A stretch of DNA of 64,000 nucleotides, taken from the NCBI GenBank assembly GCA_028826165.1, contig JAPDFW010000053.1:611904-675903 (forward strand), given 5' to 3'. Positions 36,434 through 41,030 of this stretch are shown here, in pieces (the first letter of the stretch is position 1; every line of letters starts with the position of its first letter). A program made the position numbers and the translations under genes. The notes under the pieces are model-generated. The model had not been told where the DNA came from and made no database searches. It was given only the letters and a program-made list of their open reading frames with translations. The stretch is from Anaeramoeba ignava BMAN. Its lineage: Eukaryota; Protista; Anaeramoebae.

Positions 36434-37674
36434 TTAATTTTTATTGTGAACTTGATTTGGAAATTGATTTGGAAATTGATTTGGAAATTGATTTGGAAAT
36501 TGATTTGGAAATTGATTTGGAAATTGATTTGGATAATTTTGAAATTGATTTGAATAATTTTGAAATTGATTTGAATGATTTTGAAATTGATTTGAAATTT
36601 GATTTGAAAATTGATATTGATTTGGAAAAGAAAATGAAACCATATTTTGATTTTCAATTAAAGAAAAAAGCATTACAATTGGATGTGTTGATGGATTAGC
36701 AAAAAGTAAATTAGAATTTTCTTGTGAATTTTGTGAATTTTGTGAATTTTGTGAATAAAAATCCATCGGAAAATTATTTGATTGTTTTTTTTAAATCATT
36801 CAAAAATGGTTCGTTTTTTGTGTCATTGGATTTTGAAAACGAAAGTTGAGAAAGTGAATCAATTGTTTTAAAAGAAGTATCATTAAATAAATGTTTTCTT
36901 AAATTTTGATTTTGATTTTGATTTTGATTTTGATTTTGATTTTGATTTTGATTTTGATTTTGATTTTGATTTTGATTTTGAATTTGATTTTGAATTTGAT
37001 TTTGATTTTGATTTTGATTTTGATTTGATTTTGATTTTGATTTTGATTTTGATTTTGATTTTGATATAGATTTATTTTTGATTTTGAATTTGATTTTGAT
37101 TTTGATTTTGATTTTGATTTTGATTTTGATTTTGATTTTGATTTTGATTTTGATTTTGATTTTGATTTTGATTTTGATTTTGATTTTGATTTTTATTTTG
37201 ATTTTGATTTTGATTTTGATTTTTTTGATTTTGATTTATATTTTGATTTTGATTTTGATTTTGATTTTGATTTTGATTTTGATTTTGATTTATATTTTCA
37301 ATTTCAATTTTATTTTCAATTTCAATTACATTTCCATTTTCATTTTCATTTTCATTTTCATTTTCATTTTCATTTTCATTTTCATTTTCATTTTCATTTT
37401 CATTTTCATTTTCATTTCCATTAGATTCTTTTGATTTTATTTGTTTTGATTCGTATTCTTGAAAGGAATTTTTGTTTAATTTTAAATTTGAATTTTTTGG
37501 AGATTGAAGAATTTGTTTTGTTCTATATTTATAGTAACAAGTTTGACAAAGAAAAGTAGGAGGTTTTATATTAATTTTTGTCCAAATTCCTGATTCTTGA
37601 GTTTTACATTCTACACAAATTCTTTCTTCATTCAAATTTTCTTTAATTTCTTGACTTTGTTTGTTTTCTTGCAT
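36434..37674 (-). CDS. Divergent GATA-type zinc-finger protein with EN/QN and NQFP low-complexity tracts
   Basis: CVECKTQESGIWTKINIKPPTFLCQTCYYKYRTK = C-x2-C-x19-C-x2-C with the conserved W and L. ORFs 37072-37674 and 36434-36766 probably join across indels in the QN microsatellite. Confidence 0.65.
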
Positions 37675-37907: not shown

Positions 37908-40900
37908 TTAATTTAAAAATTCTAATTTGGATCGATCAATTTTTTCTTTTTCAACAGCTTTAAAAAAAGCAGAAATGAATTCAGAAATTGAAACAATAGG
38001 TTTTTGCAAGAAAAAAGAATGAGTAATTAAAGGGAGTTTTCTTAAAGTTCTTCCACTATAACCTTCACATTTCTCAGCAATTTGATAAAAAAGTAAACTA
38101 GAATTTGTAGTTTCATTTTTTTTTGAATCACGAAGTAATTCAATTGATTCACAATCCAAAAGAGATCTTCTTGGAGTTATTATTCCAACTCTCATTAACT
38201 CTTCAGTACATGATCTTAATATTTCATATCTTGCTTTTTGTGTTGGTAATCCAATGTATTGTTTTAAATCTGCTCGATCTACAAATGCTAAATCAATTGC
38301 TCCTGTTATATTTGATGTTGTTAATACTAATACATTTGGAAATTGTTTGAGTTGATCTGATTTGTGTTAATAATGCATTTACAACTCTAATTGCATCTGA
38401 TGGTTCAGCTCCTTTTAATAATAATATTTAATAATTAATATTTACAAATAATATTTAATATTTAATATTTAATATTAAATATATAATAATAATATTTAAT
38501 ATTTAATATTTAATAATTAATATTTAATATTTAATATTTAATAATTAATATTTAATATTTAATATTTAATATTTAATATTTAATAATAATATTTAATATT
38601 TAATAATAATATTTAATAATTAATATTTAATATTTAATATTTAATAATTAATATTTAATATTTTATATTTAATAATAATATTTTATATTTAATAATAATA
38701 TTTAATAATTAATATTTAATATTTAATAATTAATATTTAATAATTAATATTTAATATTTTATATTTAATAATAATATTTAATATTTAATATTTAATAATA
38801 ATATTTAATATTTAATATTTAATAATAATATTTAATATTTTATATTTAATAATAATATTTAATATTTAATATTTAATAATAATATTTAATATTTAATATT
38901 TAATAATAATATTTAATATTTAATATTTAATATTTAATAATAATATTTAATATTTTATATTTAATAATAATATTTTATATTTAATAATAATATTTAATAA
39001 TAATATTTAATAATAATAATTAATATTAAATATTTAATATTTAATATTTAATATTTAATATTTAATATTTAATAATTAATATTTAATAATTAATAATAAT
39101 AATTAATAATAATATTTAATATTTAATAAATAATATTTAATAATTAATAATAATATTTAATAATTAATATATAATAAACAAACCAGACATCGCAGATTTT
39201 CTTGCAGTAGCTAAACTCTCAACTTCATCAATTAATAAAAATACAAATGATCCTTGATCTTCTATTAATTCTCTTATCTTCTTGAATAATTTCATTACTA
39301 ATTTTCCTGATTCAGAAAACCATTTACTAAATAATGAATGAGTATTGATTTCAATAAGTTGACAAAAAGCATATTTGTTGCTAAATTTAATAGAAAGCTT
39401 TTGAGAAAGTGCTCGACATAATGAAGTATTATGAGTTACAGTAAAATCACCAAGAAGAAAACGTCCATTCCCATCAATTTCAAACCCAAAATATTCACCA
39501 ATTCCAACAGATTCAATTTCAAATTCTGTTAATAAGCAATCACTCTTATTTTTTTGTGGATTTCCCTTTTTATAATACGATAAAATTGGTAATTCTTCTA
39601 ATTCTGAACCACAAATAAAACATTCATAATTCTCATTAGAATTTTTTGATTTTGAACTAATATCTTTTTTTTCAGCAGAAAAACCTAATGATCTAGCAAT
39701 ATAAATTATATCCTCTATTAATTTTTCAGATTCCCCACAAAATTTATAGCAATTATTCTCATAAGATCCAAAAGAATCAAACAATCCAGCTAATAAAGAT
39801 AATCGAATATTTCTTGAATTGCATTTATAATCTATTGGAATGCGTTTATGATCACCAAGATTATATTTTAAGAGGCGTTGATAAAATAAGTTTTTTTCAT
39901 AACCATAAGCTGAAAATTTCTTTCCATCTTGAATATAAATATTATATTCTCCATTTTTTTCCTTTTCCAAACATAAATGATAATTTTTCAAATATTCACT
40001 AAAATATTGCGAAATTTTATCATTTTCTATTGATATTTTCTTTGAATTACAAGAGCAATTCCCTAGCAAATATCCAACTATATAAGGATCTAAATCAACC
40101 TCTTTTTCAATAAAATCAATATATGTTTTGTATAATTTGTAGTGGCTTTTCCAGTAAGAAGATTTTTGTAAATAATCTTTAACAGAAATTTCAATGATAG
40201 AATTTTGATCATTATAATTTGGATCATTTTGAGATTTTTTTTTCAAGCATAAAATATGGGGTTCATTGCAAATCCATGGTTGACCCTTTTTTGGTATAAT
40301 TTTATACATTTGATCTTTTCCACAACAAATTGACAAAACATTTCTTGGATTTGAATCATCACCCATTAATTGATCCCCAATTAAAACATCCTCCACTTTC
40401 TTTATTCCTCCATCAAACATTAAAACAGAAGTTCCTGGAGCTAAGCATTTCCCAGTTCCACTTGGGCCATGAAAAAGAACAACGCGATTAAAAGAGATCA
40501 AATTTGAATCCACTTTTTTTTCTGAAAAAAGAACAGTTGTCAAAATGTAATTGATTAAATTTTGCTTTAAATTTTCCTCAAAAAATAAACTTTCCCACAA
40601 TCCGTTAAATTGTTTTGATGGAAGAATCCATTGAAAACAAGCAGAAAGATCTGCATCTTCTGAATCAACATTTTCTTCTAAAATTGGTTCTTCATTTAAT
40701 TGATAAACATAAATTTTTGTTTCAACTTCTGAAATTTTTAAATTAGGATCAATTGATAAATTTTCTTTTTCTTGTGTTTCTTTATTAACTGTTATTTTCT
40801 CAACATTTTCATTTAAGATCTTTTCATTTGAAAAATTGATAGTTTTTTTTTCAAGAATTTTTATTACTTTTTCATTTTTGATCTTTTCATAAATTAATTC

Positions 40901-40969
40901 TTTAATTGTAGAAAATTCTATATAACTTTTTGTAGAAATTTCAACTTCAATTTCTATTATAAAAGACAT
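37908..40969 (-). CDS. TRIP13: PCH2/TRIP13 AAA+ ATPase (2 exons) with an in-frame intein
   Basis: [32 protein letters not shown][intein][55 protein letters not shown]|[55 protein letters not shown]. Intron 39183-38412. One extra base near 38358. Confidence 0.95.
38412..39183 (-). repeat. TRIP13 intron (772 nt) made of almost pure A/T repeats (plus-strand AATATTT / AATAATATTT)
   Basis: GTTTGT donor and TAAAAG acceptor restore the conserved SG|AEPSDA. Confidence 0.9.
39428..40447 (-). mobile_element. Intein (340 aa, Cys1...His-Asn, +1 Thr) with a degenerate LAGLIDADG homing-endonuclease domain
   Basis: Block [14 protein letters not shown], block [12 protein letters not shown], block [13 protein letters not shown], block [14 protein letters not shown], block [17 protein letters not shown], blocks [26 protein letters not shown]. 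Removing it restores the Walker A motif GPSGTGKT. Confidence 0.96.
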
Positions 40970-40995
40970 TAAAGAAAAGAAAAGAAAAGAAATTT

Positions 40996-41030
40996 TCAAA
41001 ATGAAAAAAAAAATGAAAAAAAATGAAAAA
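40996..41030 (-). promoter_or_regulatory. Three TCATTTT Inr-like motifs upstream of the TRIP13 ATG (divergent promoter shared with 41244+)
   Basis: Plus-strand AAAATGA x3 at ~41000-41026. Oppositely oriented TCATTTT copies at ~41217 and ~41227 serve the + strand gene. Confidence 0.55.

Follow-up and report, generated by a model that had tools for sequence, protein, structure and literature searches.

A predicted class-1 intein within Walker A of Anaeramoeba ignava nuclear PCH2/TRIP13, probably an immobile relic

Introduction

What is a long open insertion doing inside the ATP-binding loop of a nuclear PCH2/TRIP13 gene, where could it have come from, and what does it imply for the gene that carries it? 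These questions are raised by a stretch of 64,000 nt of the protist Anaeramoeba ignava, hereafter the window, which corresponds to positions 611904-675903 of contig C46 in the assembly of strain BMAN (42.8 Mb, 147 contigs). A first-pass annotation of the window described a 1020-nt insertion in the Walker A motif of PCH2 as an intein, proposed that the ATPase depends on protein splicing and that splicing could act as a switch, and saw a hint of viral delivery. In this study we examine the insert, its host gene and its relatives in databases and in the same genome. The insert is, with high confidence, a class-1 intein composed of a Hint splicing domain with an inserted LAGLIDADG domain; it lies between the Walker A Lys and Thr of single-copy nuclear PCH2/TRIP13 and is probably an immobile relic.

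Results

Identity of the insert

The insert occupies positions 39428-40447 of the window on the minus strand, the strand of the whole host gene, and comprises 1020 nt, that is 340 codons, in frame and with zero stops. The minus-strand open reading frame (ORF) 39164..40999 reads ...FHGPSGTGK up to the insert and TSLCRAL... after it, and the inserted protein starts with CLAPGTSV and ends with GDFTVTHN; the insertion between GPSGTGK and TSLCRAL, together with its splicing hallmarks, had been described correctly to the base. The two remaining frames over the same positions contain 21 and 45 stops, and a 340-codon open frame would arise by chance at the base composition of the insert with p ~9e-16. 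The DNA of the insert ends in TGC...AAT, as opposed to the GT...AG of introns. With a GC content of 0.26 and a GC content at third codon positions (GC3) of 0.144, to be compared with a GC3 of 0.126-0.148 in the exteins of exon 1 and 0.077 in exon 2, its codon composition is fully host-like. The genuine PCH2 intron, which lies 244 nt downstream of the insert, has a GC content of 0.005.

Searches with the translated insert point consistently to an intein of the type of PI-SceI, the VMA1 intein of Saccharomyces cerevisiae. The search against intein profiles proposed in the first-pass annotation returned a Hint-domain match, Pfam Hom_end_hint, over residues 1-78 (2.1e-19, 70.9 bits for a cut-off of 32.1), and Pfam Hom_end matched residues 211-282 (6.9e-7). 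A sequence search of the PDB retrieved PI-SceI (2e-12), followed by fungal Prp8 inteins. An AlphaFold model of the intein, computed from a 46-sequence family alignment, reached a predicted local distance difference test score (pLDDT) of 91.7 and a predicted template-modelling score (pTM) of 0.90. When the model was submitted to Foldseek, the best matches were ten chains of PI-SceI, with E from 3e-26 to 8e-22 and a template-modelling (TM) score of 0.72-0.80, with archaeal VMA inteins, PI-PfuI, Prp8 mini-inteins and I-DmoI below them; the model superposes on PI-SceI over both domains and on I-DmoI over the endonuclease domain.

From Pfam, the PDB search, the alignment, AlphaFold and Foldseek, the 340-amino-acid (aa) product of 39428..40447 is thus assigned to class 1 (Cys1 ... 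His-Asn / Thr+1) with a PI-SceI/VMA-type architecture. The N-terminal half of the predicted Hint domain (40118..40447, intein residues ~1-110), delimited by Hom_end_hint and by the model, in which beta strands extend to about residue 107, holds block A with Cys1 and block B with N61 and H64. It is followed by the LAGLIDADG homing-endonuclease domain (39548..40117, residues ~111-300), placed by Hom_end and the PI-SceI alignment, and by the C-terminal Hint strands with blocks F and G (39428..39547, residues 301-340), whose last motif, GDFTVTHN, is invariant in the family according to the alignment and the model.

The residues expected of a splicing-competent intein are all in place: Cys1, the block B motif N61-E-P-H64, His339-Asn340 and a Thr at position +1. 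The 46-sequence family alignment shows no variation at C1, N61, H64, H339 or N340. In 122 aligned relatives C1, H64, H339 and N340 are again invariant, and the position of N61 is occupied by Asn in 116 and by Thr in 6. In tblastn comparisons with a plant and a mollusc PCH2 (P0124, P0134), the N-extein ends at GTGK and the C-extein resumes at TSLC with no residue lost or duplicated, so that precise excision would restore a canonical P-loop (GTGKTSLC). Protein splicing can be inferred from these hallmark residues and flanks: the insert would be transcribed and translated together with the host protein, after which Cys1, N61/H64, His339-Asn340 and Thr+1 would excise the intein and ligate GTGK to TSLC.

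The host gene

As assembled, the PCH2/TRIP13 gene extends over 37908..40969, from an ATG at 40969-40967 to a stop at 37908-37910, with two exons and one intron of 772 nt, as deduced from the ORFs, tblastn and the deposited protein. Its product corresponds to GenBank KAJ5078626.1 / UniProt A0A9Q0RF92 (747 aa, P0122), which was retrieved at 100% identity in a search with the C-extein. The same search returned 2358 database relatives, and the plant and mollusc PCH2 proteins are collinear with the entire gene in tblastn. Exon 1, from the ATG at 40969 to 39184, consists of 174, 340 and 81 open codons. The first 174 form the N-extein (40448..40969), which carries the TRIP13 N-terminal domain (Pfam TRIP13_N, 5.1e-9) together with the beginning of the AAA+ module, and ends with the Walker A sequence GPSGTGK, the orthologues being aligned up to GPPGTGK. 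The exon 1 part of the C-extein (39184..39427) runs from Thr+1 (TSLCRAL) through Walker B (LLIDEVES) and is 65-67% identical to the PCH2 of plants and molluscs; between Walker A and Walker B, identity of the host to PCH2 from plants and animals amounts to 65-74%. The flanks of the insert match Pfam TRIP13_N and AAA, KAJ5078626.1 additionally carrying PF23242, and the gene has the layout of PCH2/TRIP13, in which the TRIP13 N-terminal domain precedes a single AAA+ module containing both Walker motifs, A and B. PCH2 is single copy, with no second PCH2 in the genome.

The spliceosomal intron (38412..39183, GT...AG, phase 1, 772 nt) is placed by the junction SAMSG|AEPSD, which agrees with KAJ5078626.1 and with the orthologues. 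It consists of a nearly pure A/T tandem repeat with the 7-nt unit TTTAATA (plus strand), in about 112 copies and with a GC content of 0.5%, directly bordered by coding exons of 24-28% GC.

Exon 2 (37908..38411), delimited by tblastn, encodes the remainder of the AAA+ module as well as the lid, and contains one extra base at 38358. At this place the orthologue alignment leaves one frame after LLTQI, which ends at 38359, and is taken up in the next by DQLKQFPNV from 38357 on, every orthologue residue being accounted for; in tblastn this amounts to a single additional base relative to the frame conserved among orthologues. In the assembly the frame is consequently interrupted within the AAA+ core, to which the sensor-1 strand LTTSN belongs. 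The deposited protein derives from the same locus and is identical over exon 1, including the whole intein; in exon 2, however, its model continues for nine codons out of frame and its coding sequence then skips 38288-38333 as an intron. Comparison with KAJ5078626.1 shows that this 46-nt "intron" (38288..38333) costs 24 conserved residues, the LTTSN sensor-1 strand included, all of which are encoded by the DNA in the shifted frame. The 46-nt "intron" is most likely an artefact that compensates for the extra base and restores the frame, and the PCH2 model as deposited is probably in error over exon 2. As to the extra base itself, an indel error of the assembly is the better candidate, with a very recent frameshift as the lesser one, because about 150 open conserved codons follow the break. 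No independent contigs encoding the 601-aa or 611-aa ORF products were found.

Other PCH2 genes and earlier records of the intein

A survey of PCH2 orthologues for empty alleles, which had been suggested from the sequence, could be carried out on the proteins listed by our searches: none of the 118 other PCH2 proteins among the matches listed (plants, molluscs and others, 337-820 aa) contains a Hint domain. When residues 110-260 of KAJ5078626.1, which span the junction, were used as query, the combination of TRIP13_N and Hint was found only in KAJ5078626.1 itself, the other matches being other P-loop hosts. It appears that no other intein-bearing PCH2 was found anywhere in the collection of 5.8 billion proteins. 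No PCH2 of A. flamelloides was among the 120 matches listed, and PCH2 is not one of the eight insertion sites common to A. ignava and A. flamelloides (PMC10710043).

The supposition that this allele might already be catalogued turned out to be right. NCBI names KAJ5078626.1 'intein-containing pachytene checkpoint protein precursor [Anaeramoeba ignava]', and since the GenBank/UniProt product name already says so, the intein is not new. Anaeramoeba is also reported to be rich in inteins, Gallot-Lavallee et al. (PNAS 2023, PMC10710043) having published 103 inteins for the A. ignava BMAN genome, among them the inteins of a five-intein Prp8, and having described homing into P-loops of unrelated proteins as well as links to Nucleocytoviricota. 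In the assembly we count at least 41 Hom_end_hint matches, five of which lie in one 2812-aa ORF on contig C98, in agreement with the five-intein Prp8. Neither PCH2 nor TRIP13 appears by name in the main text of PMC10710043, and a literature search combining intein and pachytene checkpoint returned nothing relevant; judging from the GenBank product name, the PCH2 intein is presumably among the published 103.

State of the endonuclease

The endonuclease domain set into the Hint domain retains two LAGLIDADG helices according to Hom_end and to the model. The catalytic residues of PI-SceI, however, have no acidic counterpart at the end of either motif: in the HMMER alignment D218 lies opposite N130 and D326 opposite F226, motif 1 reading LLGNC (N130) against a family consensus WLGDG, and motif 2 LAGLFDSFG (F226) against LLAGLIDxDG. 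Both acidic residues are retained in 73 of the 96 environmental copies and in none of the 26 A. ignava copies, 23 of which have neither (the A. ignava loci counted, L002-L032, include for example C102:40067-41032, C35:455252-456259 and C120:126385-127440). An active homing endonuclease was therefore rejected for lack of the catalytic residues, and with these residues replaced the PCH2 intein is most likely immobile, like its sisters. The distribution suggests that an earlier burst of invasions into P-loops was followed by genome-wide decay of the endonucleases in A. ignava.

The intein family and its copies in A. ignava

Database searches recovered 424 relatives of the PCH2 intein with about 35-42% identity over the full length. 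Among 96 end-to-end relatives, 91 are inserted after a Lys and 85 at GK|T or GK|S. Precomputed Pfam domains of the hosts include thymidine kinases, DnaB-type and superfamily 2 helicases, SNF2, AAA+ proteins, PhoH, ABC proteins, dTMP kinase and RFC; other hosts, labelled from the flanking sequence GKPGTGK|TTLI, are putative packaging ATPases. The family occurs in 307 records of cultured phages, and named relatives outside phages come from the packaging ATPase of Marseillevirus LCMAC101, from Asgard archaea and from bacteria. The PCH2 intein is a member of a widespread family targeting the GK|T/S site of unrelated P-loop NTPases.

The same genome contains about 40 related inteins, and the flanks could be read at 30 loci, hosts being named from flanking motifs and not by family search. 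Most of the sister inteins sit at Walker A-type GK|S/T sites, in an XPB-like helicase, a dynein, three RecQ, four MCM, three Lon and two SMC proteins, an ABC protein, an SRP receptor, eIF5B and an EF-like GTPase. About 20 other A. ignava P-loop genes carry a sister intein at the same junction; some sisters are found at VMA-b and Prp8-d. Lys|Thr sites outside P-loops are also occupied, DK|TGT of a P-type ATPase (L015, C55:173787-174881) and AKWK|TAEE of Prp8 (L022, C98:203279-204331), and the Lys|Thr shared by these sites hints at ectopic insertion guided by microhomology. At four further loci (L013, L016, L017 and L019, on C92, C102, C126 and C137) the N- and C-terminal halves of related inteins fall in different ORFs, with a TAA inside the match in one of them; introns, frameshifts or decay may have interrupted these copies.

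Origin of the intein

The closest copy of the PCH2 intein in its own genome is only 35-41% identical, so that a recent intragenomic donor is lacking. Over the full length the PCH2 intein is best matched by a metagenomic RFC intein (P0242, 44% identity), and several others reach 41-42%. Relatives of similar distance (35-44% identity) are spread over cultured phages, a Marseillevirus metagenome-assembled genome, bacteria, Asgard archaea and unplaced metagenomic contigs. In a quick maximum-likelihood tree the PCH2 intein falls outside the clade containing 21 of 25 A. ignava copies and has no supported neighbour; the environmental sequences of this tree were picked by similarity to the PCH2 intein, which biases the query toward a central position. 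Viral delivery, as hinted at in the first-pass annotation, is a plausible reading of these sequences but not a specific one, because phage, giant-virus, bacterial and archaeal relatives are all at much the same distance; no donor can be named.

Two of the metagenomic contigs with RFC inteins (L033 and L034, inteins P0244 and P0243) share a conserved neighbourhood of HMG-box, RFC and protein-kinase genes, which gave no clue to the organism (small eukaryote or giant virus?). In the window itself, the neighbouring minus-strand ORF 37072-37674 encodes a short N-terminal zinc-finger-like Cys-x2-Cys ... Cys-x2-Cys arrangement and, behind it, long repeats of the dipeptides NE and NQ.

Discussion

The identification of a class-1 intein at the GK|T site of Walker A in a nuclear PCH2/TRIP13 was supported in every sequence-level test. 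Two points weigh against it. Among inteins in general a Thr at +1 is rarer than Cys or Ser; within this family Thr is the commonest +1 residue. The assembled host gene moreover contains the 1-nt frame break in exon 2, with the consequence that a functional PCH2 product is not certain.

The nature of the insert and the state of its host can each be read otherwise. Removal of the insert as RNA, by the spliceosome or as another intervening sequence, would mean that there is no intein, and we give this practically no weight: TGC...AAT ends instead of GT...AG, an exon-like composition (GC 0.26, GC3 0.14) next to a true intron of GC 0.005, 340 codons open against chance, and homology end to end to 424 inteins with a PI-SceI fold all contradict it, and together rule out a spliceosomal intron as the identity of the insert. 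A more serious reading, unlikely but by no means negligible, holds that the extra base at 38358 is real and that PCH2 is a decaying pseudogene giving no functional protein. It can draw on the clean +1 break between LLTQI and DQLKQFPNV in the orthologue alignment, on the fact that the deposited model gets past it only with a 46-nt "intron" at the price of 24 conserved residues including LTTSN, and on the absence of another PCH2 copy from the genome. Yet exon 1 is intact over its 174 + 340 + 81 codons with all splicing residues retained, and the approximately 150 open codons past the break are still 50-51% identical to plant and mollusc PCH2, a pattern that suits an indel introduced in the assembly, or else a mutation of very recent date. 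If the gene were indeed a pseudogene, the intein would reside in a dying gene and would be uninformative on the regulation of the HORMA remodeller.

Two further proposals take the intein for granted and concern its source and its use. The PCH2 intein could have been acquired separately from an external, viral pool of P-loop inteins, and not copied from another A. ignava gene; we regard this as a tentative option, somewhat less probable than its negation. Its position outside the clade of 21 of the 25 A. ignava copies speaks for it, as do a short end branch of 0.32 compared with ~0.8-2.1 in the others, a weak adjacency to an RFC intein and to the inteins of the GKPGTGK|TTLI proteins (putative packaging ATPases), best matches that are metagenomic (44% for P0242, 41-42% for others) against 35-41% in its own genome, and the relative carried by the Marseillevirus packaging ATPase. 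On the other hand, no starred branch of the tree includes the PCH2 intein and support in the Shimodaira-Hasegawa-like approximate likelihood ratio test (SH-aLRT) is at most 92; the environmental set was picked by similarity to the same query, the codon composition is fully host-like, and relatives from phages, bacteria and archaea lie just as close. The idea that splicing is conditional, for example on redox state or metals, and works as a post-translational switch on PCH2 seems highly improbable. Conditional splicing is known in some inteins, and the precursor cannot have a working P-loop. In-vitro assays of inteins have also been set up in the presence and in the absence of TCEP (tris(2-carboxyethyl)phosphine) and Zn2+ (PMC10710043). 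No point specific to the PCH2 intein favours such a switch, however; its splicing residues are the plain family consensus, and with the corresponding junction occupied by a sister intein in about 20 other P-loop genes of A. ignava, selfish insertion at a site that is hard to delete fits better than gene-specific regulation. The still narrower combination, in which the extra base is an assembly error, PCH2 is functional and the intein splices in a condition-dependent manner (for example through redox of Cys1 in a strict anaerobe), is a very long shot. If it were true, protein splicing would act as a gate on the remodelling of HORMA domains and thereby on progression through meiosis or a checkpoint.

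The dependence of PCH2 ATPase activity on splicing, as distinct from a switch, is a sound inference, because the insert separates the P-loop Lys from the Thr. This accords with what is established for AAA+ proteins. The same position offers the simplest account of why a long-resident, endonuclease-dead intein would persist: only an exact deletion would leave the ATPase intact, so that an immobile relic may be retained where nothing but a perfectly precise loss is tolerated.

As a discovery the PCH2 intein is of little weight, the intein having been named and the exceptional intein load of the genome published before. Three observations may nevertheless be of use. PCH2 appears to be an intein host that was not encountered elsewhere in the protein collection searched. 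It has been speculated in print that promiscuous endonucleases are still moving inteins within the A. ignava genome, and the loss of catalytic residues in every A. ignava copy examined, which suggests that the inteins now present are immobile leftovers of an earlier invasion, bears on this speculation. The deposited PCH2 protein, with its sensor-1 segment missing, should be handled with caution in surveys of meiosis genes.

Comparison with known inteins

The closest structural counterpart of the PCH2 intein is PI-SceI (PDB 1VDE, 1LWS), with which it shares the bipartite architecture and the fold (E 3e-26, TM ~0.77-0.80), a clearly similar sequence in the block A region, Cys1 and the terminal HN. 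Identity over the structure is nevertheless only about 18%, the PCH2 intein is 114 residues shorter, the catalytic D218 and D326 are replaced by N130 and F226, and the host site is the P-loop of PCH2 instead of VMA1. The +1 residue is Cys in PI-SceI and Thr in the PCH2 intein.

Among phages, relatives are found in the helicases of SETP3 and vB_SenS-Ent1, which infect Salmonella, and of Klebsiella phage JD001; these inteins are annotated 'intein containing helicase', belong to the PI-SceI-type family, end in THN and show 38% identity over the full length (E 1e-57 to 1e-61); they differ in having bacteriophage hosts and helicase exteins. The intein in the packaging ATPase of Marseillevirus LCMAC101 (QBK85415.1, 35% identity over the full length) and those of metagenomic RFC small subunits (P0242-P0244, 39-44%) occupy the same GK|T junction. 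When the query was restricted to the junction and the N-terminal Hint part, identity to QBK85415.1 and the RFC inteins rose to 62-69%. What separates these inteins from ours is the host protein and, on the RFC contigs, the company of HMG-box and kinase genes.

Within Anaeramoeba, the P-loop inteins of cluster 1 (Fig. 6B of PMC10710043) offer the same picture, in which one genome carries homologous inteins in Walker A of proteins that are not themselves homologous. They are, however, class-3-like with atypical N-terminal residues. The PCH2 intein, by contrast, possesses Cys1 and resembles VMA/Prp8 inteins; its Cys1 rules out membership of the class-3 cluster 1, and it more likely belongs to the large, virus-linked cluster 15 of the same study.

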